Below the pieces are notes generated by a model that worked only from the letters and a program-made list of their open reading frames with translations, did not search any database and was not told where the DNA came from. Position numbers and translations under genes: made by a program. Shown one piece after another: positions 7,487 through 64,000 of a stretch of DNA of 64,000 bases. This stretch comes from Lepidodermella squamata (taxonomy: Eukaryota; Animalia; Gastrotricha): assembly GCA_047495785.1 (NCBI GenBank), contig JBLDXI010000042.1, positions 4,898,001 to 4,962,000 of the forward strand, given 5' to 3'. Each line of letters starts with the position of its first letter. The stretch's first letter is position 1.

Positions 7487-8571
7487 ATGTCGCCACATGG
7501 TCAGGTAAGGTTTTGTGGGCCTGGAGAAGGTTTTGCATTAAACGTTCATCCTATTCTAGGATCAAGGAGCTGTTTGCTCAGATGTCTTTATGCTAATTCG
7601 ATTTGATCGATCGATGCTTCAGGCATTCCGAAATTCGATGGTTAAATCGAAGTCAGTCTTAGGAAATTATGGTGGTCGGTGGTTGACCATTGCGAAGGAA
7701 GCTACCGTAGTCGATGGCGATTGGCCCATGCGTAAAACAATCGCTGTTTTGTCATTTCCCAACCGTGAACGCGCTCGTATGTGGTTCCAATCCGATCCCA
7801 GCTCGAAACAGCAAGATTGGCTCGGCGGCGTTGATGTCGTTATCGTCCCACTTCAGTACAACGCCCCGCGTGAGAAGGATACCTATGTCATGTTGGATGC
7901 AGGTGTTATGGATGAGGAGCGATTCTTGAATGACTACGTCAACGCGCAAATCGATACGCTGCGCCAAAATGGCGCATCGTGCTACGTCGTCGCAAGCAAG
8001 GTGCACGAAAATCTTCGCGGTCTGTGGGTGCCGCGATTCATCGTCATGCATCAGTTCCCATCGTACGAGGCTGCGCTTAGATACTACAGAAACGGTAATT
8101 ATTATAGCTGATTTGCCTAGTTATAATAGTTTGGAAAGCTTGATAACCTGACTCGACTTGATCCTAGTTTGATCCAGGTTTAATCCTGATTCACAAAATT
8201 CGAGTGTCGATGATTACATATTTGATCCAAACTTGAGTTAGTGATCAAATTATGCTTATCAAATTATTTGATCCCAAATTGATCCTGAGTGTTTCCCAGC
8301 TTTATTCCGATTTAAACGATATTAGAATGTGCGATGTTTACCTAATTTGAAGCCTGAATTTCCTAAAATCTTCGATCAAGAATTCGACCTAACTTTTTTC
8401 ACAGCAAAATGAAAAATCTCAACTCGAGTGATTTTACATGAGGCTATATTTTCTTCTTTTTTAGAATCTGGTGAATACGCTCCATTCGCAAACGCCCGTT
8501 ACGCCTCAGCAGCTTCGACCCTTGTCATCTTCCGCCACGAAGCATGCGATCTTTGCGAGCGAGCGGTCTAA
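7487..8571 (+). CDS. Protein with two tandem DUF1330-like (dimeric alpha-beta barrel) domains, 3 exons
   Basis: Exons 7487-7504, 7560-8094, 8465-8571. Two copies of the pattern (YGGRW..VVDGDW..VLSFPNRERARMWF; NGASC..LRGLW..MHQFPSYEAALRYY..EY..FANAR). Confidence 0.85.
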
Positions 8572-14313: not shown

Positions 14314-17300
14314 TCAGCTGATGCAAGCGAACGGAAATCGTTCAAATATTCCACGATTCGGATAGTAACATGGGTGTAGCTGCAGCTGACCATCGGCCAA
14401 CCAATAGCCTACAAATGTGACATAAAGCGCGCATAAAGCATTAAATTCGCAAAGATTGTCAACTCACAGTGCTGCTTAGGGTCCGGAGCAGGATTATTCT
14501 CTATGCTAATAAGTGCGCTGTCGAATTCCTCGCCTGATATCCACTTTTTCTCAGCTAGATCGATTCGCCTGCCGTCTAGCCACAGCGATGAGTCGAGCTC
14601 AGCAGCTTTATCGCTCACAAAGCTGTTTGTAGCGTCATCTTTCACCACAGGCAATGTCTTGTTCAGCGACTTGCACAGGTCCGAAGCAGCCGACCAATTA
14701 GCAGGTTGAGTTAGCATAGTGTAGTCTGACAAGTCCTGTATCATAGGTCCCATTTTCCCACGAGCTACTTTTTTCAAGTAAAAATGACTCACTTTGCCGA
14801 CGCACAGCACATTACTAAGGGTTTTCAAGCAGTTTTCACTAGAAATGCCATACTCCATAACAAGACCTGTCCGTCGAAAAACTCAAAATTATAGCGCAAC
14901 AAGATTACTGTAGACGTAGTAATTTTCGTGTGGATTAATTTTCGCGTTTTGACAAAACTTCCAAGTCAAATTTGCCGCCGATCAAAGGCAAAATGCCGAA
15001 ATCGATCGCCGCGAATTTAAAAATATCGCGCAAATAACTACTTTACGTTAGTCTCCTAAATCGTAAAAATAGTTAATAGTAATTTAGCAAAGCCAAATGG
15101 TGCATTTCTAAATTCCAACCTAGAAACTGCACCGCGTATCGCAATTGAAGTGCAAAATGGTTTGATGCTCTTCAAGACTTTTCTTACTTAGTACAATTTT
15201 CATATTCTGGAAAGGAAGAATTGAGCTTACAAGATCCGCTGGAGCCCGGGCCATTGCTATTCCAGTACGGTGACAACATGTCGACTATTGAGTTGTCTTG
15301 TTCCCAGCGGAAAACGTGTGTCAAGCCAACGGTAACGGAGGGGTTACTAGCAGCAACAAGCACGATTTTCAAAGCCGCCAAGTCAGCCGGGGTGGGGAAC
15401 GTAGCGAGACGGCCACCGTAATATGCGCACATGGAGTTTACATAGCCGTAAGGGCCGGAAACCTTCAGTAAGAAGTACGTTCTGTTTGAGCCCTGTGCGG
15501 GAATGTCCAGTTGGCATATGGCGTGATTAATTGCGAATGTCGATGCAGTAGTGAACGTTTTAACCTTCAACAATCAAAATTAAATAAGACGATTGACAAG
15601 CAAAATGTGGCTCACTCGGGTAGTTCCAGCAGGGCAGGTGTTGTAACACTTCTTGCCGGTTGGCGTGTTGCATTGCACAGCATACTGGTGATGAAATATA
15701 AGCTTATAGCACCTTGATAGTAGACAATAGTTTTACCCAAGACTCGCAGTTTTCCTTAGTGCGGAAGACACCAATCGAGTACTCGCCCGTTTCGTTTGCG
15801 AAGCAGCCGGTGCTGTTAAGACGGCAGGCCGTGAACCTGCCATCTGCCACATTGAAACACCGCTTGTGAGGCTGCCTGTTGTCAATCAGCGTAGCTGAAT
15901 TTACGGAAACAGGAACATGGTTTTTTACTGAAGCTCTCTTGTAAAACACTCACCGTCCTCAGTTTGAAGACAAGCTTCGAGACTTTTGAGTTTCGTTTTG
16001 CCCTTGACCTGGAAAAAAAATATATTTGAGAATTAGCAACATCAATGCAATAGGAACAAGCATAGTGTAATAATAGGTTTTCTTCGAAGCTTCATTGTAA
16101 TTTCAAATAGGTCGATCATACATCTTCCCCTTTGCATGGAATTCCGCTTGGCAGACACATGGTTAATCGACCTCCATCAGGTTCTACACAGGCGTCGAAG
16201 GTCTTGCTCTGCAAGATAACGAAAAATAAGCTGGCATGCTGGCATGCTGTAAAAAAAAGTATTTTCACCGTAAAATTTGTTTCAAAGGCCTTGCATTGCG
16301 CGAAATTGGATCGCAATCGGTACAAATTGTTGAAGGATCCGCTGACCTTTACGTAGATGAATAGAAGAAATAATTTCTCAGTCAAACTAAAAAGGCATTT
16401 GAAAATAACAGTTTGCTGTAGTCAGAGTCAGAACTATAACAGATCGAAAACTAACGATCTCTTCATAAGTGATAATGTTATTCACGGTCGGAGGTTTTTC
16501 ACTCCGACTATGTAAAATTAGACACGAAATTCGACTGCTCTCAACAGAGCCTGATCATCCATTAGGCAAGTAGGGCAGTTGCCTTAGGGCCCGATGAAAT
16601 TTTGGCAAATCAGTTAAAAACTAAAGGGGCCCCTTACCATCAAGGGCCTGCTTGGGCCAGATCTGCGATTTGCCTTAGGGCCCTTGGTAATTTTCAGGTG
16701 TCATGATCCGGCACTGGTTCTCAAGTAAGCTTTTATAAACCGCGTGTTTACTGGCAACACTGCCAACAAGCGCAAATTCTTCGAAAATGCTCGAAAAAAT
16801 AATAAACAATAATAATTAAAATTAAAATAAATTCGGAACATTTTATATTGTCGGATAGAGGACATTCTGACCGTTTACAGCATAATTTTCTTTGGTTATT
16901 TCAATTGTTATTTTGATACTTATTATCATCAGAACATTGATCGAGTGTCTAATCTATAACTTTGTTTTCTCCTACTACACATTTCCTGTCCTAAATCTGA
17001 ACTTGTCCTGCAATTATATGTTGTTTTCCCTAACATTGACAAGCTGCCCTCTCTTGGGCGTATGGGCTTTCAAATAAAAATAAAATAAATAAAAATAATT
17101 CGATATCCCTGAAATAATTCGAAACAGCTTTTGATTTGATTTGAAACGAAAGTGATTTCACGGCATCACTAAAGAATAATGTTAGAATTACCTGAATCTC
17201 ACCGTCTTTGCAGGCATGACTGCCCGTTCTACAGCGTGTCGTGAATGTCGACAATTTGTAACACAGCCTAGCCGTCTGTAATAGGGCAAATGATGAGTTG

Positions 17301-33904: not shown

Positions 33905-36217
33905 TCAAGAACTTTCACGGCTTCTGAAAATGGGATAATACCACGTGAGTGATGTGGTCATCGAGTAGATCAAACTTCCATAGGCTACAGCTATTCTTTG
34001 ATGAATAGAATTTTCGATCACAATTACAATCAGAAGAATTCCAAGCAACAGAGTGATTGCATTAGCCGTTCCTAACCTTATCCAAACGATCTCCCGTTTC
34101 CATGCATGCGACAATGAAACATGACCCAGTTGATAGTTGAACAGTAGGCCAGCAGTTAACATTACAACGTGGAGGAATGAAATCGATAGTGACCAATCGA
34201 TAGCATCCAGAGACATGCAACTCGTTGAAATTGTTTCAAATTCAGTATCGACCTCTTCGCTGTAAAGTGATTTACTGGAGATTTGACACCGTACACGATC
34301 GGAAATAAACCAAGCGGCTAGTAAGATAGCATTCCAGATTGAAAATGAAAAGCTTGCAAGCACGCAGTATTTGTCTAGAGTACTTTCGGCAAAGCCTAAC
34401 CTTGGGTTACGGCCATTTTGAATAGGCCTAGAGCCAGCTACCTCAGATATCAATCCGAAATTGCTTGTTAGCAATTGTGCGTGAGAAGGACCAGCACTCA
34501 GTCGAATCCTAGAAACGTTTGTTGCGATATTCCGCCGATTCTTGACAATGAGCCAAGGCCGAAATGTCAAAATTGAATTTATCAGTGATGATCCTAGAAT
34601 TAAGCAGATATACGATGCTGTTGTAATGCTCTGGTCAAAAAGCGTTACAGAAATTAGAACCGCGGAGATGTTGATCAACAAGCAGCCAAATGATCCTGAA
34701 ATCTTACTATATCGAAATAACAATGATCCGCCTTTTCTCCATACGATGTAGATGCATGCTGACAGCTGAGCAACGCAAGTAATACTGGATAAGACCAAGA
34801 TTGAAATGAATATTTCCGCTGCAATTTGTGGGTAGATCAATTTTAAGATTGATCTGTCTCTCGGAGCTCCCCAGTAGTTCTCGAGCTTGTCAACCCATCT
34901 CAAGAAGTAGCTGTTGTATTCAAACTCGGTCGTATTCGGAATCTGCTGAAAAGTTGCCACGGTCTTGAGTCCTTTACCAGGTAGCCAGAAGTCGATCTCT
35001 TGAATGTCATTGTCCGGATTGCCGTAGCTATTGAACGACATCGGATTAGGCTTACGAAGACCCATGATTTTGAGATTCAGAAGTGACTCATTAGCTACCT
35101 TAGATACATAACTCGGACTAAGGCGATAATCTCGTAGAGACATATTTTGCTGTAGCAACTTCTTCTCAGCTTCATCCAAAGCCACAATCGTCCTCAGAAC
35201 AGCGTCGTAGCAAAGAAACCGAGCTATCCAGTCAGCGGGTTCTGTTCCGTTCGTATGCTGCAATATCATTCGCTCAATCTGAACAGGCGTATGGCCGATG
35301 TACGACTTTTGACCGCTGCTCTCCGGCAGAGGGTTCAGCATATTACCGAACCAAATTGCGAATTTCATCTGTTCTATAATCATAGCCGTTGTACAACCAG
35401 GATAAAGGGAGTCGCCATTGACGGAAGGGTCAACGTATGACCCTATATCAGCTAAGAATGCGTACTTGGGACCGGTGATGCCTTGATTATATGCCTCGCA
35501 CAAAATTTGGTTCAATGCGAAGTCAGCAGACGTAACGATGGCAATTATCCGCAAATCCGAATCTTTGAGTAGCTTCATGTTTTGCGGATTTGCCTGAATG
35601 AACATATCAATCCAAGGAACGGAAACGCCAGCGGCTGTCGCTCTGTCCAACAAAAAGATTGCTGATTCGTAATTGCGAAAGTTCGCTACATTCGCAACTA
35701 TTGCAAATTGATGCCATTTACCGACTTCTTTGATGAATCTCACGTAAGTTACCATGATGATCTTTACAGTAGGATTCCCCAGATACATGTTAGGGATACG
35801 TTCTCGTTTTGATAGACCCGGGGCAGTACAGAATGTGCTAATCGCAGATGAGTGGATTTGCTTCAGCATCCGTCCCATAGTCAAACAGCCTGGTGAGTAT
35901 TGAGGTCCGATGATGAGCGGTGATTGCAAACTTTTGCTAATCACGTCGAAGTTTCTCACGTAGGCCATTACCTGCCTAACGGAGGCTACACCTGTTTCCT
36001 CGTCGACGTAAAGCATTTCGATGTCATAATCCGGTAGAATGTCCCTACGAGCGTTGACCTCTTGCACTGCTATATCGTTAGCTATCATACATGTCGTTCC
36101 GACGTTATACGCATCTTCTCCACTGGTTGGAACCAAATGCAGCATAGATAGTGTGTACGGTTTCTTGGCTTGAGTAGCACCGAATATGATTACAAAAGCA
36201 ATCGCTAAGGAGAACAT
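33905..36217 (-). CDS. GABA-B-receptor-like class C GPCR, intronless (paralog 1)
   Basis: 770 aa: signal peptide, Venus-flytrap motifs (VNARRDILPDY, IIGPQYS, LSKRERIPN, LCEAY..GITGPKY, CYDAV), no Cys-rich domain, seven hydrophobic segments. Confidence 0.9.
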   Translation of the reverse strand: MFSLAIAFVIIFGATQAKKPYTLSMLHLVPTSGEDAYNVGTTCMIANDIAVQEVNARRDILPDYDIEMLYVDEETGVASVRQVMAYVRNFDVISKSLQSPLIIGPQYSPGCLTMGRMLKQIHSSAISTFCTAPGLSKRERIPNMYLGNPTVKIIMVTYVRFIKEVGKWHQFAIVANVANFRNYESAIFLLDRATAAGVSVPWIDMFIQANPQNMKLLKDSDLRIIAIVTSADFALNQILCEAYNQGITGPKYAFLADIGSYVDPSVNGDSLYPGCTTAMIIEQMKFAIWFGNMLNPLPESSGQKSYIGHTPVQIERMILQHTNGTEPADWIARFLCYDAVLRTIVALDEAEKKLLQQNMSLRDYRLSPSYVSKVANESLLNLKIMGLRKPNPMSFNSYGNPDNDIQEIDFWLPGKGLKTVATFQQIPNTTEFEYNSYFLRWVDKLENYWGAPRDRSILKLIYPQIAAEIFISILVLSSITCVAQLSACIYIVWRKGGSLLFRYSKISGSFGCLLINISAVLISVTLFDQSITTASYICLILGSSLINSILTFRPWLIVKNRRNIATNVSRIRLSAGPSHAQLLTSNFGLISEVAGSRPIQNGRNPRLGFAESTLDKYCVLASFSFSIWNAILLAAWFISDRVRCQISSKSLYSEEVDTEFETISTSCMSLDAIDWSLSISFLHVVMLTAGLLFNYQLGHVSLSHAWKREIVWIRLGTANAITLLLGILLIVIVIENSIHQRIAVAYGSLIYSMTTSLTWYYPIFRSRESS

Positions 36218-36686
36218 TTTTCACCGGGAAAACGCAATGCATCAATATAAGTATGAAACACTTGGATCTGTCAGTAGTCTTCACTTGCGGGGCCATAGCT
36301 TTGTCGCGAATTTTGACAGGAAGCTCTTCAGCTTGCCAATTCGGCGGAAATATTACCGTTGAAAATATGCAAACTCCTCTGCTTTTTGTTAAAACTTTGT
36401 TCTCTGCATAGTTGTTGCTGGAAAATTGAAACTTCAGTGTCTACGAAAGAGTAACTCTACATTATTTGGATTAAGAGGAGGAGGAAGACGATGCTTTTCG
36501 AAAGTCCGCCCATGCGCGGCTGTTACCAAATAAAACGGATGGACGATTTTCCAGTTTTAGAAATAAACGAGATTAATTCATAGGTTTAATAATACTGCTG
36601 ATAACGGTTGATTTAGCGCAAAGCAAGGTCAAATTTGCAGACGATATGAATGCAATACGGCGAGAAAAGCATTCAACAGAGTTGCG

Positions 36687-37316
36687 CTAATTCAGTTTTT
36701 TGTAAAGCAAGGTGAAGTTTCCAGGGCAACCTTTGAAAGGTCCGCCGTAGTTGTCTAGATTGATCCTTGCCGCTACTGTGAAGCCGAGCTTATGCTCATA
36801 GATATGCTCCGTCGCCGGCGCGTCAGTCTCAACCATTATGTACTTACATCCTTTCGCTCGAGCATTTTCAACAACGAACCGTCGCAATTGCGTCGCTATT
36901 CCTTTACCACACATATCCTGGACTGTCGCGCCCATCCAAAGGTGGGCAACGCCCCCGTTTTTCTCTTCATCCACGATTTCAGACGGTAATGACTTGTGAA
37001 GTTCCTCCATTATCGGTAGCACAGGATTACGCGGGAGATACTCAAGATTTCCGTCGTCACCGGTTCCTGGAGCTTGACACTGAATAACTGCAATCATTCG
37101 ATCGCCTTCTTCCGCATAAACACTGTAGCCTTGATCGACACGGGAGGTTTCAAACAGCTCCTTAACAAGGTGGTAAAAATAGTCTTCGTTGAAGGAAGCA
37201 TCGCCTTTCCGGATGTGGAGCATTGTCGTGCTACTGTCGTGAAATTGTTTGGCAATCAAACGGGTTGCTTCTTCAACCCGATCTTGCGTTAAAACTTTAC
37301 ATGCTATGTTTGCCAT
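36687..37316 (-). CDS. GNAT acetyltransferase, arylalkylamine N-acetyltransferase-like, intronless
   Basis: Motif A HLWMGATVQDMCGKGIATQL and motif B IMVETDAPATEHIYEHKLGF. Confidence 0.85.
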   Translation of the reverse strand: MANIACKVLTQDRVEEATRLIAKQFHDSSTTMLHIRKGDASFNEDYFYHLVKELFETSRVDQGYSVYAEEGDRMIAVIQCQAPGTGDDGNLEYLPRNPVLPIMEELHKSLPSEIVDEEKNGGVAHLWMGATVQDMCGKGIATQLRRFVVENARAKGCKYIMVETDAPATEHIYEHKLGFTVAARINLDNYGGPFKGCPGNFTLLYKKLN

Positions 37317-37524
37317 TCTTAAAGAGCAATCACTATACGTTTCGGTTATAATGCTCTCACGCCGGCTAGTCTTGGACGCTGTTGAGCTGATAAGAAATTC
37401 AAAGATATAATCTTTTCAGCTCTGCGTTCTTATCAGCACTGCAAATTTAACATACATACTGTGATATGGCTAATTTCCTATCACCGCGTACCGGGTTCTA
37501 TTTTAGCGGTTAGTGAACAACACC

Positions 37525-38913: not shown

Positions 38914-41229
38914 TCAAGATGTTCTGCGGCGCTTCAAAAGAGGATAATACCACGTGAGAGATGTGGTAGATGAGTAAATCAAGCTCCCGTACGCCACAGC
39001 TATTCGTTGATAAATGGAATTTCCGAGTACAATCACAATGAGAAGGACGCCGAGTAACAGAGTTGTTGCATTAGCTGTTCCTATCCTGATCGCTGAAATT
39101 TCTTTTTTCGAGAATCCTGATGCCGAAACATGACCTAATTGATAGCTGAACAGAAGACCCACAAATAATACAACAACGTGTAGGAATAGAATCGATAGCG
39201 ACCAGTTTACTGCATTTGAAGACGAGCACTGCGTTGTGATGGTTTCAAATTCAGTGTCAAAAGCTTCATCGTAAAAGGATTTGTTTGAAATTACACACGT
39301 GACCGGATCACTCAAGAACCACGCGGCCAGCAAAATTGCGTTTACAAGCGAAAATATGAAACTTGAAATCACACATCTTTTATCCAACCTGCTTCCGTTT
39401 GAATCTAAATCCGGTACACCCACCGAGTTATTTGGACGACTTGTAGAGACAGCTGCACCGGAAGATCTCAAAGGATTACTAATGGATCGGCCAATGGAAC
39501 TTTTAGTGCTTCCCATCTGATTGGTAGGAGCAGCCTCTACCCGCCGAATCAGCCTTCTTTTGGCAACTAGCCAAGGTCTCACCGTCAAAGTAGAATTCAT
39601 CAATGATCCGCCTATGATCAAACATATTATCGAGGCCATTGTGATAGACGAATCAAGACTTGCAGCTGAGAAAAGTCCAGCTGCAACATTGACAAGCAAA
39701 CAGCCAGCGGAACCTAATAACTTGCTAGACGCAAATGAAGAATTCAGTTTTTTCCAGAGAATATAGCCACTGACTAAAATTTGAGAAGCTCCAATAAAGC
39801 TAGCCAGAACTACCACTGAAACAAAAATTTCGTTGGATATCTTCGGGTGGATCAATTCAAGAATCGATCTATCCCTCGGGGCCGTCCAGTAGCTGTCAAG
39901 CTTATCCACCCATCTCAGGAAGTAGCTGTCGTATTCAAACTCAGTTGTGTTCGGAATTTGCTGGAATGTAGCAAGTGTTTTGAGGCCCTTGCCGGGTATC
40001 CAAAAATCAACCTCCTGCACGTCGGAATCTACATTACCGTAGCTATTGAACGACATCACATTGGGAGTGCGAAGGCCCATGATTTTTAGGTTCAAAAGAG
40101 ATTCATTAGCTACTTTTGAGATGTAGCTGGGATTATGGCGATAATCTCGAAGGGACATATTTTGCTTCCGCAATTTCTTCTCAGTGTCATCCAATGCTAC
40201 AATCACCCTCAGAGCAGCATCGTAGCAGAGAAATCGAGCTAACCAGTCAGCTGGTACTGTGCCATTAGTTTGATTCAGTATCATTCGATCAACTTCAACA
40301 GGAGTATGACCTATGTAAGACCTTTGACCGCTGCTCTCTGGGAGTGGAGTCAACAAATCCCCGAACCAAATTGTATATTTCATCTGCTCCAGAATCATTG
40401 CTTTTGTGCAACCAGGATAAAGGACATCTCCAGCAAAAGCTGGATCGACAAAAGCTCCAATATCTCCTAAAAAGGCATACTTAGGACCTGTAATACCTTG
40501 CTTATGGGCCTCGCACAGAATCTGGTTGGTTGTACTGTCCGAAGATGTTACAATGGCAATGATGCGCAAGTCCGAATCTTTAAGAAGCTTCATGTTTTGA
40601 GGATTCGCTTGAATAAACATATCAATCCAAGGAACCGAAACGCCAGCGGCTGTTGCTCTGTCCAAAAGAAAGATTGCCGATTCGTAATTGCGAAAACTGC
40701 CAATATTTGCGACGATAGCAAACTGGCGCCACTTTCCTACCTCTTTTATGAATCTGAGGTACGCAGCCATAATGTTTTTCTCAGTAGTTTGACTAAGGTA
40801 CATGTTAGGAATGCGCTCTCGCTTCGACAGGCCCGGAGCCATGCAATAAGTACTGAGGGCAGATGAATGAATCTGCTTCAACATCCGCCCCATCGTTAAA
40901 CAGCCCATTGAATATTGAGGTCCGACGATTAGTGGGGATTGGAAACTTTGGGAAGTCTCTTCGAAGCTACGAACGTAAGCCATGGCTTGCTTCGCAGACC
41001 CTTCACCAGTTTCTTCGTCGATATAACGCATTTCAATTTCGTAATCGGGCAAGATATTACTTTGAGCATTAACTTTGCTCGCGACTATATCGTTGGCTAG
41101 TATACATGATGTTCCGACGTTGAACGCGTCTTCGCCGCTTGTTGGCACCAAATGCATTAAGGAGATTGAATAAGGTTTCTTGGCTTCAAAGCCTGTTACA
41201 AAAATGACAGTAATAAGTAAAATAAACAT
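38914..41229 (-). CDS. GABA-B-receptor-like class C GPCR, intronless (paralog 2)
   Basis: 771 aa, colinear with and highly similar to 33905-36217. Confidence 0.9.
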   Translation of the reverse strand: MFILLITVIFVTGFEAKKPYSISLMHLVPTSGEDAFNVGTSCILANDIVASKVNAQSNILPDYEIEMRYIDEETGEGSAKQAMAYVRSFEETSQSFQSPLIVGPQYSMGCLTMGRMLKQIHSSALSTYCMAPGLSKRERIPNMYLSQTTEKNIMAAYLRFIKEVGKWRQFAIVANIGSFRNYESAIFLLDRATAAGVSVPWIDMFIQANPQNMKLLKDSDLRIIAIVTSSDSTTNQILCEAHKQGITGPKYAFLGDIGAFVDPAFAGDVLYPGCTKAMILEQMKYTIWFGDLLTPLPESSGQRSYIGHTPVEVDRMILNQTNGTVPADWLARFLCYDAALRVIVALDDTEKKLRKQNMSLRDYRHNPSYISKVANESLLNLKIMGLRTPNVMSFNSYGNVDSDVQEVDFWIPGKGLKTLATFQQIPNTTEFEYDSYFLRWVDKLDSYWTAPRDRSILELIHPKISNEIFVSVVVLASFIGASQILVSGYILWKKLNSSFASSKLLGSAGCLLVNVAAGLFSAASLDSSITMASIICLIIGGSLMNSTLTVRPWLVAKRRLIRRVEAAPTNQMGSTKSSIGRSISNPLRSSGAAVSTSRPNNSVGVPDLDSNGSRLDKRCVISSFIFSLVNAILLAAWFLSDPVTCVISNKSFYDEAFDTEFETITTQCSSSNAVNWSLSILFLHVVVLFVGLLFSYQLGHVSASGFSKKEISAIRIGTANATTLLLGVLLIVIVLGNSIYQRIAVAYGSLIYSSTTSLTWYYPLLKRRRTS

Positions 41230-41916
41230 TTGTTATTTTGGTTTGATTTTAATCGAATTGCTATTGACTAGTAGTGTCGAGACGACTACGAGACCTATAT
41301 GCAATTATTTGGGTAGACGTTGAATTTCCTGTTTTTCTCTATTTTCCTAACAGGAAGCAATGCTGTTAAGGCACAGACCGGATTTTACTCCGCTCTGATG
41401 CAAAATATTGGCTATTATTTTTGTTCACGCAGACATTGCCAGGCTCGGCTCTCGCGTGAAATATGAAACACTCATGTGTCAAAAACCGACGCCTGTGAAA
41501 GATAACAGACTATCGAGCTTGGGGGAGCCCAATAATACTTGTTCAGCGGGGCTATCATGTGATCCGCTAAATGAATATATTGTCCATCTTGGTCCATCTT
41601 GGTACAAAATGTCTGACAAGACATCAGCCAACCGATGCTGACTGCGAGGCTGTTCATACTTTGAATATTATATATTATTTCTACTACTATTCTGCACAGT
41701 ATAGTTTCAGTGTTTTGTATCTCAAGATCTCTCTTCTGGGATGAGCGTTGTATTTGTATACACTTTAAATAGTAGGAACTTAAGTTTTTAATCCTGAAGA
41801 GCGTATTAGAGATCAGGTTGATCTTTATGCTGAAGAGTTACAATAATTTTATACATAATATATGTAGTGATCACTCCGTGACCTATTTTGACCGATTTCA
41901 GGATTCGAAAGTCCGA

Positions 41917-50917: not shown

Positions 50918-50988
50918 GCATCGGTGGTTCAGTGGTAGAATTCTCGCCTGCCACGCGGGAGGCCCGGGTTCGATTCCCGGCCGATGCA
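50918..50988 (+). tRNA. tRNA-Gly(GCC)
   Basis: GCATCGG/CCGATGC acceptor stem, TGGTTCAGTGGTAGA D arm, CTGCCAC anticodon loop, GGTTCGATTCC T arm, downstream T-run terminator. Confidence 0.98.
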
Positions 50989-55882: not shown

Positions 55883-56328
55883 TAAGTGGTGAAATATATG
55901 ACGATCTATGACACAGTGATAGATTGTTTGACAATAGGCAGGTCCTACTACTGCTTCGAGACACGGATAGGAATTGAATAAAGTCAGAAGTGAAACCAAG
56001 TAATTATCCTTTCTCCTGAATCCCCCATCTGTAACAGAATGTTTGATTCAGCCTGAAAAAAAACACACGTGTGAACATGACGAATTGCATCACAGGACGC
56101 GTTTCTATGTTTAAAAGCACTTTTCACACTGACTCAAATTCTCACAATGGCTCATTTGCACCACCCACGTCATGCCTAGTGTACGCATACATGTACAGTA
56201 GTAACGCATTTGACTAAAATATATCAAGGGAAAAGAACACTATAGCTTATTTAACTTCAGCCAACATTTCTTCTTAGCATCATCCTTTTTACTGAACGAG
56301 CTAACATTTCCAATTCTCGGTTGGTAGA

Positions 56329-57487
56329 ATGTTAAGAATAAATGTGGGAAATATCATCGGATCTGCACTACTAATATTCGGCTTCTTACCACATGCTTCA
56401 GCGGCCGTCGATTGCAGCCGTGTATCTTCGTGTTTGGTCGATAATTTAGGCACCCTTACTTCATTGCTGAAAGAAGCTCAGTCTCTGCAACAAAGTCCTG
56501 ATAGAAACGACGCAGATGCATCGGATGCTCAGCTGAAAAAGGTAAGGTATCTAATATTCATTCACAGTTGTTGCTAATTTAGTTTTCACAATTCAGATAT
56601 GCTCATCATTCGACCCTATAATAGCTTGCACAGGTCGAGACGCAGCTCGATTATGCGAATTCAAATTTGGGAAACGTGGACAGGTTTTCCGCCTCAGTTA
56701 TCTGGTCATTCTCTGCGATTTCACTGTGAAACTTCGCCAATGTTCCAGCGATTTCAATGACACGTCAGGGTTCACAGTTCCGCCACCAAAGCCTTGCCCA
56801 GGCCAAACTTTACCACCAACTACACCAGCGATACTGACCACGACTCTACCAGGGCAAAAAGCACCGCTAAATCTTTGCTCCCAACAGTTCCCAGACGTTG
56901 AAAACGAAGCGAAGGAGTTTAACAATAGCACAACAACGCCAGCTCAATCACTGGACGACTGCGATGATCCGTACAACTGTGATGACGGATCGGACTCGAA
57001 TGCGTATGAAGTTCACGCGGTTAGGAATTGCACGCGGCTGAAGCAGTACATCGGCTGTTGGTTGTTTTTTGCGAAGACGAAGTGTCAAGGCCGCGCTGAG
57101 GGCATGATTCAGCAGATGTACAACATTTACAACGATCTATCTGGCCGTAAGTGCGACCAAATTTCGCCGGATCTTATCAACTACGGCGATATGGAGTACA
57201 GTTATGTGAGCGAATTTCTGCCGAAGGAGCAGCTATGCCCAACAACTACGCGCCGAACAACGCTTCGCGCCGGGGAGACTGCGGCAAAAACAATGCGCAC
57301 CGAATCTATACCAACTACCGTTGTGAGGCAGTTGCAAAAACAAACCGATGCCTCAAGGCGGCGGAAGGTGACACCTATCTCGCGGCCTGAGGATGAAGAT
57401 GATTACAGCGGTTTCGTACCTTTGTCGCCAACTTTTTGTCTTATGGTTGCCAGCGGCATTATAGCTGCGCTAAACGTGTTGCAATAA
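56329..57487 (+). CDS. Cys-rich secreted, probably GPI-anchored surface protein, 2 exons
   Basis: Exons 56329-56541 and 56597-57487; signal peptide, two Cys-helical regions (ICSSFDPIIAC...LC; NCTRLKQYIGC...KC), Thr/Pro linkers, hydrophobic C-terminus with no cytoplasmic tail. Confidence 0.8.
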
Positions 57488-57983
57488 CAAACTTTTTCAC
57501 AAAGTAAAGCTGATAGCGCATGTTTTGAGAAATCGTCTGATACAAAATAAGATGTTGCCCTATGCCAACAAGAGGAAGAAAATTTAACTGCGCAGTTCGA
57601 CATCAGATTCAAGTTTCGAATCCAAAACTCATGATATTTCCGGAATCGGACAAGAGACGTACGATAGGACGCCGCAGCACGCGGAAAATCAGAAATAATG
57701 CGATTTTTTAATGAGGTGCAGAGTCCAACTTAAGTGTTCACATGGGAAGTTGACTAGATGACGCACTCACCACTCACACCGGTGATCTGGTAAGCAACCG
57801 TTGGTCAACAGTCATGAAATTGCAACTCAAATTTTATTTGTGATGCCACAACCGTCATGCTTTTTCATCAGTTCAGTACGAACGTCATTCATGGCAGCGC
57901 TCGGCGCCGAGCATGATACAATAAATAATTTATCAAATGAAAACCATCACCGGAAAATACTGTTTTTGTTTTCTATATAATGC

Positions 57984-60900
57984 TTAAGCTACCACCGTTT
58001 CCTCCCACTTCGTTTCGATGACTGGGCCTTCTACCACCGTTTCGATGACTGGGCCCTGTTCTACCGTTTCGATGACCGGACCCTGTTCAACCGTTTCGAT
58101 GACTGGGCCCTCTTCGGTCCATTCTTGGTATTGAGTTTCAGAGCTGCCTTCAGACGCAGATCCACTCGAATGGGATGAGCTAGAAGCCGATCTGGATTTC
58201 ACGCGGGATGAGCGAGAAACCGATCTCGACTTTCTGGACTTCACACGGGACGAGCGAGATGCTGATCGGGATTTCACGCGGGATGAGCGGGAAGCTGATC
58301 TAGATCTCACGCGAGATGAGCGAGAAACAGAACGGGATTTCACACGGGATGAGCGAGAAACAGATCTCGATTTTGCGCGGGATGAACTAGATGACTTGCT
58401 CACTTTACGGCCAGAATCGCTCGTAGACTTGCTAGTTCTATGGTGTGTAGTGCGCTTTACAACGCCGGATCTGTGAGAGCTGGAGCTTGCTGAGCCACTG
58501 GAACGCGCTTTCGAGCGCTTGGTTATTTCTCCGCTTGATTCTTTCTCTGAAGATGACGACCGGTTAGAGGATGATAGTACAGACCGGCTATGATTTTCTT
58601 GGTGGGATGAACGATGAATAGAGGGGCGCGGGGTAGATCCTGCCTGGTAGCTGCGCGATGACCTAACACGATGGCTCCTCGATAAACCAGCTGATCGCTT
58701 TCGACGAATTACCCGACGAGAACGGCGGGAACCCTTTTTACGAATCGTAACTCTACGCTTAGCGTGACGCCTTCGCGATCTGCGGACCTTGCGCTTGATC
58801 GTACGCCTGGAGCGGCGCGACTTCGAAGACGAGGTTTTGCTAAGTGATTCTTTACGAGATCTATGTCGGGAGGAAGAACGAGTTAATTTTCCGATGCTAG
58901 ACGTCATATGGTTTCGTTTCGTTGAGTGTTTCGAAGACCGTTTACGACGGATAACACGACGACGGCGCTGCGAATGCCGCGACCGAGAAACAACTTTACG
59001 GCGTGATTGACGACGATGGGAACGACGAACCTTCCGCTTTATAGTACGACGAGACTTACGTGCCGACTTCCTGGACGAGCCATGACGGTGGGTCTTGCGA
59101 GTGACCTTCGTCGAAGAGCGACGATGACGCTTGGTCGAGCGGGTCTTGCGGCTCACCTTCCTGGAAGTGCGGTGACGGCGAGTCGAGCGAGTCTTGCGTT
59201 GGGTACGACGGACCGAGCGCTTGGTGTGCTTGCGGCGATGGACCCTCTTGCTGCGATGATGGCGCTTAACCTTCTTCACAGAGCGACGATGACGCTTGGT
59301 CGAGCGGGTCTTGCGGCTCACCTTCCTGGAAGTGCGGTGACGGCGAGTCGAGCGAGTCTTGCGTTGGGTACGACGGACCGAGCGCTGGGTGTGCTTGCGG
59401 CGATGGACCCTCTTGCTGCGATGATGGCGCTTAACCTTCTTCACAGAGCGACGATGACGCTTGGTCGAGCGGGTCTTGCGGCTCACCTTCCTGGAAGTGC
59501 GGTGACGGCGAGTCGAGCGAGTCTTGCGTTGGGTACGACGGACCGAGCGCTGGGTGTGCTTGCGGCGATGGACCCTCTTGCTGCGATGATGGCGCTTAAC
59601 CTTCTTCACAGAGCGACGATGACGCTTGGTCGAGCGGGTCTTGCGGCTCACCTTCCTGGAAGTGCGGTGACGGCGAGTCGAGCGAGTCTTGCGTTGGGTA
59701 CGACGGACCGAGCGCTTGGTGTGCTTGCGGCGATGGACCCTCTTGCTGCGATGATGGCGCTTAACCTTCTTCACAGAGCGACGATGACGCTTGGTCGAGC
59801 GGGTCTTGCGGCTCACCTTCCTGGAAGTGCGGTGACGGCGAGTCGAGCGAGTCTTGCGTTGGGTACGACGGACCGAGCGCTTGGTGTGCTTGCGGCGATG
59901 GACCCTCTTGCTGCGATGATGGCGCTTAACCTTCTTCACAGAGCGACGATGACGCTTGGTCGAGCGGGTCTTGCGGCTCACCTTCCTGGAAGTGCGGTGA
60001 CGGCGAGTCGAGCGAGTCTTGCGTTGGGTACGACGGACCGAGCGCTGGGTGTGCTTGCGGCGATGGACCCTCTTGCTGCGATGATGGCGCTTAACCTTCT
60101 TCACAGAGCGACGATGACGCTTGGTCGAGCGGGTCTTGCGGCTCACCTTCCTGGAAGTGCGGTGACGGCGAGTCGAGCGAGTCTTGCGTTGGGTACGACG
60201 GACCGAGCGCTTGGTGTGCTTGCGGCGATGGACCCTCTTGCTGCGATGATGGCGCTTAACCTTCTTCACAGAGCGACGATGACGCTTGGTCGAGCGGGTC
60301 TTGCGGCTCACCTTCCTGGAAGTGCGGTGACGGCGAGTCGAGCGAGTCTTGCGTTGGGTACGACGGACCGAGCGCTGGGTGTGCTTGCGGCGATGGACCC
60401 TCTTGCTGCGATGATGGCGCTTAACCTTCTTCACAGAGCGACGATGACGCTTGGTCGAGCGGGTCTTGCGGCTCACCTTCCTGGAAGTGCGGTGACGGCG
60501 AGTCGAGCGAGTCTTGCGTTGGGTACGACGGACCGAGCGCTTGGTGTGCTTGCGGCGATGGACCCTCTTGCTGCGATGATGGCGCTTAACCTTCTTCACA
60601 GAGCGACGATGACGCTTGGTCGAGCGGGTCTTGCGGCTCACCTTCCTGGAAGTGCGGTGACGGCGAGTCGAGCGAGTCTTGCGTTGGGTACGACGGACCG
60701 AGCGCTTGGTGTGCTTGCGGCGATGGACCCTCTTGCTGCGATGATGGCGCTTAACCTTCTTCACAGAGCGACGATGACGCTTGGTCGAGCGGGTCTTGCG
60801 GCTCACCTTCCTGGAAGTGCGGTGACGGCGAGTCGAGCGAGTCTTGCGTTGGGTACGACGGACCGAGCGCTGGGTGTGCTTGCGGCGATGGACCCTCTTG

Positions 60901-63900
60901 CTGCGATGATGGCGCTTAACCTTCTTCACAGAGCGACGATGACGCTTGGTCGAGCGGGTCTTGCGGCTCACCTTCCTGGAAGTGCGGTGACGGCGAGTCG
61001 AGCGAGTCTTGCGTTGGGTACGACGGACCGAGCGCTTGGTGTGCTTGCGGCGATGGACCCTCTTGCTGCGATGATGGCGCTTAACCTTCTTCACAGAGCG
61101 ACGATGACGCTTGGTCGAGCGGGTCTTGCGGCTCACCTTCCTGGAAGTGCGGTGACGGCGAGTCGAGCGAGTCTTGCGTTGGGTACGACGGACCGAGCGC
61201 TGGGTGTGCTTGCGGCGATGGACCCTCTTGCTGCGATGATGGCGCTTAACCTTCTTCACAGAGCGACGATGACGCTTGGTCGAGCGGGTCTTGCGGCTCA
61301 CCTTCCTGGAAGTGCGGTGACGGCGAGTCGAGCGAGTCTTGCGTTGGGTACGACGGACCGAGCGCTTGGTGTGCTTGCGGCGATGGACCCTCTTGCTGCG
61401 ATGATGGCGCTTAACCTTCTTCACAGAGCGACGATGACGCTTGGTCGAGCGGGTCTTGCGGCTCACCTTCCTGGAAGTGCGGTGACGGCGAGTCGAGCGA
61501 GTCTTGCGTTGGGTACGACGGACCGAGCGCTGGGTGTGCTTGCGGCGATGGACCCTCTTGCTGCGATGATGGCGCTTAACCTTCTTCACAGAGCGACGAT
61601 GACGCTTGGTCGAGCGGGTCTTGCGGCTCACCTTCCTGGAAGTGCGGTGACGGCGAGTCGAGCGAGTCTTGCGTTGGGTACGACGGACCGAGCGCTTGGT
61701 GTGCTTGCGGCGATGGACCCTCTTGCTGCGATGATGGCGCTTAACCTTCTTCACAGAGCGACGATGACGCTTGGTCGAGCGGGTCTTGCGGCTCACCTTC
61801 CTGGAAGTGCGGTGACGGCGAGTCGAGCGAGTCTTGCGTTGGGTACGACGGACCGAGCGCTGGGTGTGCTTGCGGCGATGGACCCTCTTGCTGCGATGAT
61901 GGCGCTTAACCTTCTTCACAGAGCGACGATGACGCTTGGTCGAGCGGGTCTTGCGGCTCACCTTCCTGGAAGTGCGGTGACGGCGAGTCGAGCGAGTCTT
62001 GCGTTGGGTACGACGGACCGAGCGCTTGGTGTGCTTGCGGCGATGGACCCTCTTGCTGCGATGATGGCGCTTAACCTTCTTCACAGAGCGACGATGACGC
62101 TTGGTCGAGCGGGTCTTGCGGCTCACCTTCCTGGAAGTGCGGTGACGGCGAGTCGAGCGAGTCTTGCGTTGGGTACGACGGACCGAGCGCTGGGTGTGCT
62201 TGCGGCGATGGACCCTCTTGCTGCGATGATGGCGCTTAACCTTCTTCACAGAGCGACGATGACGCTTGGTCGAGCGGGTCTTGCGGCTCACCTTCCTGGA
62301 AGTGCGGTGACGGCGAGTCGAGCGAGTCTTGCGTTGGGTACGACGGACCGAGCGCTTGGTGTGCTTGCGGCGATGGACCCTCTTGCTGCGATGATGGCGC
62401 TTAACCTTCTTCACAGAGCGACGATGACGCTTGGTCGAGCGGGTCTTGCGGCTCACCTTCCTGGAAGTGCGGTGACGGCGAGTCGAGCGAGTCTTGCGTT
62501 GGGTACGACGGACCGAGCGCTGGGTGTGCTTGCGGCGATGGACCCTCTTGCTGCGATGATGGCGCTTAACCTTCTTCACAGAGCGACGATGACGCTTGGT
62601 CGAGCGGGTCTTGCGGCTCACCTTCCTGGAAGTGCGGTGACGGCGAGTCGAGCGAGTCTTGCGTTGGGTACGACGGACCGAGCGCTTGGTGTGCTTGCGG
62701 CGATGGACCCTCTTGCTGCGATGATGGCGCTTAACCTTCTTCACAGAGCGACGATGACGACGAGTTGTGCTCTTACGCTGGCGACGGGTTACATTCTTCG
62801 AACGAGAGCGGCGGGTCGAGCGCTTGCTGGTGTGCTTGCGTTGAACCTTTCTGCTCTTGCGAGACCTGTGGGTCTTGCGTTGACGGCGGACCGACTTCTT
62901 GGAGCGGGTATGACGAGTGCGCTTGCGTTGGACCTTCCTGCTCTTGCGAGACCTGTGGGTCTTGCGTTGACGGCGGACCGACTTCTTGGAGCGGGTACGA
63001 CGAGTTGTGCTCTTACGCTGGCGACGGGTAACCTTCTTCGAACGAGAGCGGCGGGTCGAGCGCTTGCTGGTGTGCTTGCGTTGAACCTTCCTGCTCTTGC
63101 GAGACCTGTGGGTCTTGCGTTGACGGCGGACCGACTTCTTGGAGCGGGTACGACGAGTGTGCTTGCGTTGGACCTTCCTGCTCTTGCGAGACCTGTGGGT
63201 CTTGCGTTGACGGCGGACCGACTTCTTGGAGCGGGTACGACGAGTTGTGCTCTTACGCTGGCGACGGGTAACCTTCTTCGAACGAGAGCGGCGGGTCGAG
63301 CGCTTGCTGGTGTGCTTGCGTTGAACCTTCCTGCTCTTGCGAGACCTGTGGGTCTTGCGTTGACGGCGGACCGACTTCTTGGAGCGGGTACGACGAGTGT
63401 GCTTGCGTTGGACCTTCCTGCTCTTGCGAGACCTGTGGGTCTTGCGTTGACGGCGGACCGACTTCTTGGAGCGGGTACGACGAGTTGTGCTCTTACGCTG
63501 GCGACGGGTTACCTTCTTCGAACGAGAGCGGCGGGTCGAGCGCTTGCTGGTGTGCTTGCGTTGGACCTTCCTGCTCTTGCGAGACCTGTGGGTCTTGCGT
63601 TGACGGCGGACCGACTTCTTGGAGCGGGTACGACGAGTGCGCTTGCGTTGGACCTTCCTGCTCTTGCGAGACCTGTGGGTCTTGCGTTGACGGCGGACCG
63701 ACTTCTTGGAGCGGGTACGACGAGTTGTGCTCTTACGCTGGCGACGGGTTACCTTCTTCGAACGAGAGCGGCGGGTCGAGCGCTTGCTGGTGTGCTTGCG
63801 TTGAACCTTTCTGCTCTTGCGAGACCTGTGGGTCTTGCGTTGACGGCGGACCGACTTCTTGGAGCGGGTACGACGAGTGCGCTTGCGTTGGACCTTCCTG

Positions 63901-64000
63901 CTCTTGCGAGACCTGTGGGTCTTGCGTTGACGGCGGACCGACTTCTTGGAGCGGGTACGACGAGTTGTGCTCTTACGCTGGCGACGGGTTACCTTCTTCG
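57984..64000 (-). CDS. Giant Arg/Lys/Ser/His/Thr-rich tandem-repeat protein, C-terminal about 2000 aa (start outside window)
   Basis: The frame of ORF 57984-62744 stays open through the 240-bp array to position 64000; ends in Ser/Arg repeats and acidic (EQGPVIETV)-type repeats. Confidence 0.85.
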   Translation of the reverse strand, partial: KKVTRRQRKSTTRRTRSKKSVRRQRKTHRSRKSRKVQRKRTRRTRSKKSVRRQRKTHRSRKSRKVQRKHTSKRSTRRSRSKKVTRRQRKSTTRRTRSKKSVRRQRKTHRSRKSRKVQRKRTRRTRSKKSVRRQRKTHRSRKSRKVQRKHTSKRSTRRSRSKKVTRRQRKSTTRRTRSKKSVRRQRKTHRSRKSRKVQRKHTRRTRSKKSVRRQRKTHRSRKSRKVQRKHTSKRSTRRSRSKKVTRRQRKSTTRRTRSKKSVRRQRKTHRSRKSRKVQRKHTRRTRSKKSVRRQRKTHRSRKSRKVQRKHTSKRSTRRSRSKKVTRRQRKSTTRRTRSKKSVRRQRKTHRSRKSRKVQRKRTRHTRSKKSVRRQRKTHRSRKSRKVQRKHTSKRSTRRSRSKNVTRRQRKSTTRRHRRSVKKVKRHHRSKRVHRRKHTKRSVRRTQRKTRSTRRHRTSRKVSRKTRSTKRHRRSVKKVKRHHRSKRVHRRKHTQRSVRRTQRKTRSTRRHRTSRKVSRKTRSTKRHRRSVKKVKRHHRSKRVHRRKHTKRSVRRTQRKTRSTRRHRTSRKVSRKTRSTKRHRRSVKKVKRHHRSKRVHRRKHTQRSVRRTQRKTRSTRRHRTSRKVSRKTRSTKRHRRSVKKVKRHHRSKRVHRRKHTKRSVRRTQRKTRSTRRHRTSRKVSRKTRSTKRHRRSVKKVKRHHRSKRVHRRKHTQRSVRRTQRKTRSTRRHRTSRKVSRKTRSTKRHRRSVKKVKRHHRSKRVHRRKHTKRSVRRTQRKTRSTRRHRTSRKVSRKTRSTKRHRRSVKKVKRHHRSKRVHRRKHTQRSVRRTQRKTRSTRRHRTSRKVSRKTRSTKRHRRSVKKVKRHHRSKRVHRRKHTKRSVRRTQRKTRSTRRHRTSRKVSRKTRSTKRHRRSVKKVKRHHRSKRVHRRKHTQRSVRRTQRKTRSTRRHRTSRKVSRKTRSTKRHRRSVKKVKRHHRSKRVHRRKHTKRSVRRTQRKTRSTRRHRTSRKVSRKTRSTKRHRRSVKKVKRHHRSKRVHRRKHTQRSVRRTQRKTRSTRRHRTSRKVSRKTRSTKRHRRSVKKVKRHHRSKRVHRRKHTKRSVRRTQRKTRSTRRHRTSRKVSRKTRSTKRHRRSVKKVKRHHRSKRVHRRKHTKRSVRRTQRKTRSTRRHRTSRKVSRKTRSTKRHRRSVKKVKRHHRSKRVHRRKHTQRSVRRTQRKTRSTRRHRTSRKVSRKTRSTKRHRRSVKKVKRHHRSKRVHRRKHTKRSVRRTQRKTRSTRRHRTSRKVSRKTRSTKRHRRSVKKVKRHHRSKRVHRRKHTQRSVRRTQRKTRSTRRHRTSRKVSRKTRSTKRHRRSVKKVKRHHRSKRVHRRKHTKRSVRRTQRKTRSTRRHRTSRKVSRKTRSTKRHRRSVKKVKRHHRSKRVHRRKHTKRSVRRTQRKTRSTRRHRTSRKVSRKTRSTKRHRRSVKKVKRHHRSKRVHRRKHTQRSVRRTQRKTRSTRRHRTSRKVSRKTRSTKRHRRSVKKVKRHHRSKRVHRRKHTQRSVRRTQRKTRSTRRHRTSRKVSRKTRSTKRHRRSVKKVKRHHRSKRVHRRKHTKRSVRRTQRKTRSTRRHRTSRKVSRKTRSTKRHRRSSTKVTRKTHRHGSSRKSARKSRRTIKRKVRRSHRRQSRRKVVSRSRHSQRRRRVIRRKRSSKHSTKRNHMTSSIGKLTRSSSRHRSRKESLSKTSSSKSRRSRRTIKRKVRRSRRRHAKRRVTIRKKGSRRSRRVIRRKRSAGLSRSHRVRSSRSYQAGSTPRPSIHRSSHQENHSRSVLSSSNRSSSSEKESSGEITKRSKARSSGSASSSSHRSGVVKRTTHHRTSKSTSDSGRKVSKSSSSSRAKSRSVSRSSRVKSRSVSRSSRVRSRSASRSSRVKSRSASRSSRVKSRKSRSVSRSSRVKSRSASSSSHSSGSASEGSSETQYQEWTEEGPVIETVEQGPVIETVEQGPVIETVVEGPVIETKWEETVVA
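59116..62745. repeat. Coding tandem array, 22 x 165 bp (55 aa)
   Basis: Unit start recurs every 165 bp; units differ only at one T/G site on the + strand (Lys AAG / Gln CAG on the coding strand). Confidence 0.95.
62761..64000. repeat. Coding tandem array, more than 5 x 240 bp (80 aa), each with an internal duplicated subunit
   Basis: cgagttgtgc recurs at 62761, 63001, 63241, 63481, 63721, 63961. Confidence 0.95.

Follow-up and report, generated by a model that had tools for sequence, protein, structure and literature searches.

What is encoded by a frame that stays open for more than 6 kb and is written, over most of its length, in almost only seven kinds of amino acid? The question is raised by the right-hand end of a 64,000-nucleotide stretch of DNA from the gastrotrich Lepidodermella squamata (GenBank assembly GCA_047495785.1, contig JBLDXI010000042.1, positions 4,898,001 to 4,962,000 of the forward strand), referred to here as the window; all coordinates are window positions. 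The original prediction, made from the letters alone, placed at 57984-64000 a translated gene for a giant polycationic repeat protein, a candidate for an adhesive, cohesive or protamine-like one. Transcript, selection and codon evidence uphold the translated gene: with high confidence, the locus represents the 3' part of a genuine minus-strand gene that is expressed, polyadenylated and translated into protein; it is referred to below as the polycation gene.

The polycation gene reads from right to left. In a six-frame analysis its minus-strand frame is open from 63998 to 57987 (2,004 codons) and runs past the window edge. The sole methionine of the 2,004 residues is found at approximately residue 1697; the start codon must therefore lie beyond position 64000 and the N-terminus, as predicted, is outside the window. 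The chain seen consists of arginine (32%), lysine (16%), serine (16%), threonine (11.5%), histidine (8%), valine (8%) and glutamine (3%) plus minor residues, and its net charge (lysine and arginine minus aspartate and glutamate) of +948 over 2,004 residues bears out the description as a giant polycation. Most of it, 1,628 residues, is taken up by two tandem arrays, in which arginine and lysine together make up 52-54%, the longest run free of both is 3 residues, and the alphabet is limited to R, K, S, T, H, V and Q (one-letter code), except for one asparagine. Cysteine and phenylalanine are absent from all 2,004 residues. The 2 tyrosines, 1 aspartate, 2 tryptophans and 19 glutamates all lie in the non-array C-terminus, as do all 15 glycines, which fall within its 376 residues; the predicted lack of tyrosine, cysteine and acidic residues is thus true of the arrays. 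Serine and threonine together amount to 28% and histidine to 8-11%, and there are 278 RS/SR dipeptides and 53 furin-type R-x-K/R-R motifs, two of them at fixed positions in each 55-residue repeat unit. The GC content of the arrays and gene region is 57-62%, against approximately 42% in the rest of the window. Judged from composition, the chain is presumably intrinsically disordered.

The two arrays, as delimited by Tandem Repeats Finder (TRF), are made of 5.2 copies of a 240-bp unit (62757-64000, minus strand, 99%, cut by the window end) and 22.2 indel-free copies of a 165-bp unit (59104-62759, minus strand, 99% matches), so that the original count of 22 55-residue and more than five 80-residue units in an open frame of more than 6 kb is recovered. 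The 80-residue unit (residues 1-413) contains two 29-residue sub-repeats, detected by TRF as an 87-bp repeat inside the 240-bp unit, followed by 22 further residues, and is 54% arginine plus lysine, whereas the 55-residue units (residues 414-1628) are 52% arginine plus lysine and 11% histidine. Both periods are multiples of 3 and the arrays are joined in frame. The assembled copy number agrees with read depth: in run X1, whose coverage is even, as in genomic DNA, at approximately 35x over genes and spacers alike apart from a repeat peak at 57642-57767, word depth is 726 on the 165-bp unit and 35 in the flank, equivalent to approximately 20.6 copies against the 22 assembled. Within the 165-bp array a single site varies, between lysine and glutamine, and mostly alternates to give a 330-bp higher-order unit, which indicates that this array grew largely as a double unit. 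The 240-bp array has five variable sites, of which three are synonymous (GTA/GTT, AGG/AGA and GTT/GTC) and two replace arginine with histidine. Synonymous array variants had been offered as support for translation and are real, but six variable sites over both arrays, three synonymous and three not, are too small a sample to carry a coding argument, for which the diverged repeats of the C-terminus were used instead. A plus-strand frame rich in alanine, leucine, threonine and glycine (59007-63998; 1,664 codons) is open inside the arrays only and was set aside as a by-product of repeat composition; it could mislead gene finders.

Beyond the two young, homogenised arrays, the part of the gene seen (at least 6 kb) ends in an older region, the non-array C-terminus of 376 residues, in which four segments can be distinguished, all on the minus strand. 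Inside a unique and very basic linker (58629-59114; residues 1629-1790), 41 codons have been duplicated and have diverged (59054-58932 and 58811-58689); the linker is followed by a moderately basic, serine-rich stretch (58389-58628; residues 1791-1870; 37.5% serine). Next comes an arginine/serine (RS) domain (58164-58388; residues 1871-1945; 49% serine and 25% arginine) with five 11-residue repeats of the form K-S-R-S-V/A-S-R-S-S-R-V, a 33-bp repeat in TRF. The protein ends in an acidic tail (57987-58163; residues 1946-2004; isoelectric point, pI, approximately 4; net charge -13) with four 9-residue repeats based on GPVIET, (GPVIETVEQ)x4, detected by TRF as a 27-bp repeat; a single-sequence AlphaFold model of this tail contains one beta-hairpin of low confidence (predicted template modelling score 0.19) and is unusable for fold searches. 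The stop codon TAA (57984-57986, minus strand) ends the 2,004-codon frame and is followed by a 3' untranslated region (57823-57983, minus strand) with the sole AATAAA of the 3' flank at 57838-57833.

Several observations indicate that the frame is used. Across the 1.1-kb non-repeat part only this minus-strand frame is open, and one out-of-frame translation of the same DNA had 22 stops. Pairwise comparison of the five RS repeats gives 45 synonymous and 10 non-synonymous codon differences, with 46 of the 62 base differences at third positions and arginine switching between AGA and CGN codons, and a direct count over the 41-codon linker duplication gives 20 synonymous and 13 non-synonymous changes. 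When differences are counted by column, with flanking codons included and a neutral expectation of 29% synonymous, the ratios in the reading frame are 12 to 6 for the RS repeats (p=0.001) and 20 to 15 for the linker duplication (p=0.0004). The other two frames of the same strand have 0-1 synonymous differences (1 each in the linker duplication); the wobble-matched antisense frame has a weaker excess, 8 to 6 (p=0.005), in the RS repeats only, and for the linker duplication the antisense frames are not significant. Codon choice in the array units is also far from that of two other long open reading frames (ORFs) of the window: lysine is AAG in 26/26 cases compared with 29/62, arginine is CGT or CGC in 41/47 compared with 19/73, and GC content at third codon positions is 0.72 compared with 0.44. 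AAA and CGA codons, which stall or slip ribosomes in polybasic tracts, are absent from the array units (0 of each), and their avoidance would fit selection for efficient, heavy translation of a polybasic chain.

Transcript evidence comes from three public sequencing runs. Run X3 is identified as RNA by a 55-nt GT..AG splice in the neighbouring plus-strand gene. Runs X2 and X4 come from one and the same sample, and the T7-type adapter at the end of an X2 contig is what a complementary DNA (cDNA) library would leave. Contigs of X2 and X3 cover two blocks only, the neighbouring gene (56595-57491) and the polycation gene, where they begin at 57823 (X2 and X4) or 57868 (X3) and reach 59250, across the junction into the 165-bp array. 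RNA and cDNA contigs thus cover the 3' end of the gene and are absent from intergenic DNA: depth is zero in both X2 and X3 over 57516-57641, X3 is also empty over 56004-56507, and between 57641 and the 3' end of the gene at 57823 X2 is empty and X3 has trace depth only. The X2 and X4 contigs stop at 57823, 10 nt past the AATAAA. The last 1.28 kb of the gene is free of introns, as the cDNA contigs run colinear with the genomic ones over 57823-59103. Depth over the polycation gene in these whole-sample runs is comparable to that over the neighbouring gene.

What could such a protein do? The arrays have no cysteine or tyrosine and hardly any hydrophobic residues but valine. Ordinary folding is not expected of such a chain, charge alone is left as a possible source of activity, and a chain that can act only by charge requires a polyanionic partner. 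There are two places in a cell where such a molecule can be tolerated or is needed: the granule lumen of a secretory cell and the nucleus of a spermatid. Of these, the secretory setting is favoured by the bulk-type arrays with their codon bias, by secreted precedents, by histidine as a potential pH switch and by potentially maskable serine and threonine; long arrays of near-identical units and biased codons characterise structural proteins secreted in bulk. By analogy with the KR regions of the flatworm adhesion protein Mlig-ap1 and with the flatworm ap3 proteins, the reading we place first, as plausible but somewhat short of an even chance, is that of an electrostatic binder produced in bulk to be secreted or packed into granules. 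In the proposed model, the protein would be made in bulk by a specialised secretory cell, and the multivalent polycation would condense or bridge a polyanion (sulphated or acidic glycans, glycocalyx or a phosphoprotein) purely by charge, the condensed material forming the dense core or cohesive phase of a secretion, as flatworm KR/GRK regions do. The lack of tyrosine and cysteine would argue against curing by 3,4-dihydroxyphenylalanine (DOPA) or disulphides and for reversible, charge-based binding; the 8-11% histidine could act as a pH switch between granule and outside, and the 28% serine plus threonine could carry phosphate or (O-)glycans that mask the charge during storage. The RS domain and acidic tail, the only parts with signs of long-standing selection on the peptide, are good candidates for docking, sorting or regulatory sites.

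A number of observations weigh against a secreted binder, or against the gene on which it is built. Because the N-terminus lies beyond position 64000, the part seen shows no signal peptide or globular domain that would back secretion. The arrays are free of glycine, whereas the flatworm regions are defined as rich in GRK or GRKHS; the 53 R-x-K/R-R motifs would be convertase sites in the regulated secretory pathway; an RS-repeat domain would be more at home in nuclear SR proteins and protamines; and no sequence relative was found, flatworm adhesion proteins included, which is a weak negative in view of length limits and low-complexity filtering. At the level of the gene, the unique linker of the window differs from that of the public runs at four single-nucleotide polymorphisms (SNPs; 58576, 58684, 58884 and 59066), all of them non-synonymous (L>P, L>S, L>F and S>P) and three replacing 3 of the protein's 4 leucines, so that present-day constraint on the linker must be weak. 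RNA depth on the array unit is 1.2-5.5x that of the flank as opposed to the approximately 22x expected, which is most simply explained by the 3' bias of the libraries and leaves full-length transcription unproven. A bolder and more doubtful proposal is that an animal lineage without close protein relatives in the databases searched evolved a giant and glycine-free polycation of its own, separately from the flatworm GRK proteins. The product might be a coacervate or cohesive material switched by charge or, in a more radical version, a polyprotamine of sperm chromatin, and in both cases would found a new class of polyelectrolyte material proteins. Such a molecule would combine a seven-letter alphabet, a charge of approximately +0.5 for each of more than 1,600 residues and the avoidance of AAA and CGA with a cap in which an RS domain acts as phospho-switch and is joined by a small acidic tail of beta-repeats.

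Of the rival explanations, a sperm nuclear basic protein survives best, although we regard it as unlikely. The product would be either one giant protamine-like condenser or a polyprotein cut into protamine-sized units of 55 and 80 residues, with serine and threonine phosphorylated after synthesis and dephosphorylated during DNA compaction. Its composition (48-54% arginine plus lysine, serine and threonine, no acidic residues) is that of protamines and protamine-like proteins, the RS repeats look like SRPK-type sites, each repeat unit has the size of a protamine and is bounded by RX[KR]R motifs, and a polycation toxic in an ordinary nucleus or cytoplasm would have exactly its intended activity in spermatids. 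However, known sperm basic proteins have tens to a few hundred residues and none is an array of 2,000 residues or more, a Pfam scan of residues 1-666 and 1579-2004 detects no globular domain of H1 type, and no homologue was found; the protamine-like reading given in the original prediction, which itself noted the smaller size of such proteins, accordingly agrees with the composition and disagrees with the size. Depth similar to that of the neighbouring gene in whole-sample RNA and cDNA neither supports nor excludes restriction to the testis.

A little less likely again is an RS-like, RNA-binding scaffold of the nucleus or nucleolus comparable to SRRM2, in which phosphorylated, disordered arrays rich in arginine and serine organise condensates. 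The 278 RS/SR dipeptides, the serine-rich stretches and a distinct RS-repeat domain under purifying selection are consistent with this, and polybasic tracts serve as nuclear and nucleolar targeting signals. On the other side, the arrays consist mainly of R, K, H, T and V and not of RS/SR dipeptides or proline, housekeeping nuclear proteins seldom have arrays of 99% identity or so extreme a codon bias, and no homologue was found although SR-related proteins are widely conserved. Pfam detects no domain in residues 1-666 and 1579-2004, but an N-terminal RRM or cwf21 domain such as that conserved in this group may lie beyond the window. The furin-type motifs, with their two fixed positions per 55-residue unit, would also fit a polyprotein precursor that is cut by proprotein convertases into short cationic antimicrobial or signalling peptides. 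This is improbable: basic residues are too dense (longest gap 3) for a defined peptide to survive trimming by convertases and carboxypeptidases, and the chain has neither the hydrophobic or amphipathic segments of antimicrobial peptides nor acidic spacer pro-regions between units. Least credible of all is a transcribed, GC-rich non-coding satellite whose frame is open by chance in a unit without stops, since, despite arrays open on both strands and too poor in variants for a selection test and despite four linker SNPs that all change the protein, the frame continues for 371 more codons of unique sequence on one strand only, the synonymous excess in this frame is highly significant in two independent sets of diverged repeats, AATAAA and a mapped transcript end lie beyond the stop codon, the periods are multiples of 3 with an in-frame junction, and codon choice is strongly non-random.

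The genes around the locus are of animal type and include C-type and SUEL lectins and class-C and rhodopsin-like G protein-coupled receptors (GPCRs); they are intron-poor, the single intron seen being 55 nt long. It belongs to the convergent neighbour of the polycation gene (56539-57491, plus strand), an expressed gene (X3 word depth 94) with a GT..AG intron at 56540-56594, which stops approximately 330 bp short of the polycation gene's 3' end and encodes a product rich in cysteine, threonine and proline with a hydrophobic C-terminus resembling that for a glycosylphosphatidylinositol anchor and no Pfam family. Between the two genes, at 57642-57767, DNA depth in X1 rises from 35 to 362 with loose ends at 57693-57731, and X3 has opposite-strand joints at 57675/57789 and 57733/57837, a pattern that suggests a short element, dispersed and perhaps an inverted repeat, immediately past the poly(A) site. 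Further away, two tandem single-exon ORFs of approximately 770 residues (33908-36220 and 38917-41232, both minus strand) match ANF_receptor with E values of 2e-19 and 2e-17. Their features in the ESM Atlas resemble those of class-C GPCRs, and a search there with 33908-36217 returned only broad eukaryotic GPCR clusters. An ORF at 7560-8108 (plus strand) matches DUF1330 (E 4e-15), a mainly bacterial family, and may have been acquired horizontally, the contig being animal-type. The window also contains a GNAT acetyltransferase ORF (36690-37415, minus strand), a C-type lectin ORF (14412-14882, minus strand), a weak SUEL-lectin match (10300-11043, minus strand) and, as the only Rfam match, a tRNA gene (50918-50988, plus strand).

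Searches for relatives of the polycation gene were blank throughout. The C-terminal 371 residues and array residues 1-700 had no match among 5.8 billion proteins, and a 426-residue piece had no homologue among 1.84 billion cluster representatives; it gave two matches only, both limited to a short PV(I/L)ETV(E/Q) repeat in unrelated-looking proteins and judged convergent. Pfam found no domain in residues 1-666 and 1579-2004, the top ESM Atlas score of 0.66 is not meaningful, metagenome contigs yielded nothing by protein scan or exact 27-mer scan, and exact-protein look-ups of the terminal 150 residues and of a neighbouring ORF returned no record. Low-complexity filtering, length limits and the fast evolution of low-complexity sequence make these weak negatives, although the unique C-terminus is a fair query. 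At present the gene would therefore be classed as an orphan. The class-C GPCR ORF at 33908-36217 likewise has no homologue at E<=1e-20 among the 5.8 billion proteins; its family looks very divergent, and since a 770-residue receptor ORF fails to find a match at this threshold, the lineage appears to be poorly represented in the protein collections searched.

Natural polycations of such size and charge density are rare, and the only ones studied are the KR/GRK adhesion proteins of flatworms, the basis of an underwater glue that is reversible and non-toxic. If the bulk electrostatic binder proposed here is real, a second, glycine-free and sequence-unrelated solution would separate essential features (charge density, histidine, serine and threonine, no tyrosine or cysteine) from incidental ones and would provide a new template for charge-switchable biomimetic adhesives or coacervates; if the product instead belongs to sperm chromatin, no protein of that kind is known that would come near it in size. 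The gene also offers a naturally occurring example of how kilobases of polybasic sequence are translated with full avoidance of AAA and CGA, and of how the product is stored.

How does the protein compare with known systems? The comparison with flatworm ap1 and ap3 was made through published descriptions and composition, not by alignment. In Mlig-ap1 of Macrostomum lignano, KR regions at the protein ends add up to more than 3,600 residues and have a pI of more than 14; the role proposed for it is electrostatic cohesion that a polyanion reverses, and heparin blocks its adhesion and added cations its release (PMC6410801). Like the protein described here, it has extremely basic lysine/arginine repeats, including at its C-terminal end. 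In contrast, Mlig-ap1 has a cysteine-rich core (C-type lectin, vWD, C8, TIL and 17 EGF domains), none of which is found in the 2,004 residues seen, though one may lie upstream; its published epitope contains proline and asparagine, of which the former is absent from our arrays and the latter occurs once; and an RS domain with an acidic tail at the C-terminus is undescribed for it. The likeness to Mlig-ap1 noted in the original prediction is therefore apt in composition and architecture, without making the protein a member of that family, the arrays having no glycine.

The closest analogue, which the original prediction did not name, is ap3 (Tmed-ap3 of Theama mediterranea; Mile-ap3a/b of Minona ileanae), which, as here, is a giant stand-alone low-complexity polycation. 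Tmed-ap3 has 3,700 residues, of which K+R+G+H+S make up 88%, with a signal peptide and 581 glycines (PMC9229212). Flatworm ap3 forms the electron-dense core of the adhesive vesicle, which is lost upon ap3 knock-down, and is thought to bind by charge (PMC9229212, PMC6745481). The histidine contents are similar (approximately 12% in Tmed-ap3 and 11% in our 165-bp array), both genes are long and repetitive and break short-read assemblies, and neither protein relies on tyrosine/DOPA chemistry. However, ap3 is glycine-rich (GRK/GRKHS; approximately 16% glycine in Tmed-ap3), whereas our arrays have no glycine and threonine and valine instead; lysine is at or above arginine in ap3, whereas arginine is twice lysine here; and ap3 has a short degenerate motif in place of the near-identical 55- and 80-residue units. 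The long, K/R-dominated low-complexity region of the flatworm KR/GRK family is thus present and its GRK/GRKHS composition is not, and the resemblance would be one of kind and not of family.

Other large or basic proteins share part of this design. Protamines and protamine-like proteins share the dominance of arginine, lysine, serine and threonine, the RS motifs and the unit length, and our arrays are likewise nearly free of acidic and aromatic residues, but the protein seen here is one to two orders of magnitude larger, is built as tandem arrays and has no H1-like domain that could be found. With SR-related, SRRM2-like proteins it shares an RS/SR-rich domain (residues 1871-1945). Profilaggrin-type polyproteins and the polybasic cements of tube worms contain large, basic, histidine-containing repeats that are stored in neutralised form (phosphorylated or complexed) and act by charge or coacervation; filaggrin needs an S100 N-terminal domain and proteolytic processing, and worm cements depend on glycine, tyrosine and DOPA. 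These belong to unrelated lineages with unrelated sequences, and their special features are not visible in the part seen here. Among these systems, the product of the polycation gene would be best described as a giant polycationic low-complexity protein, apparently unrelated in sequence to the known ones.

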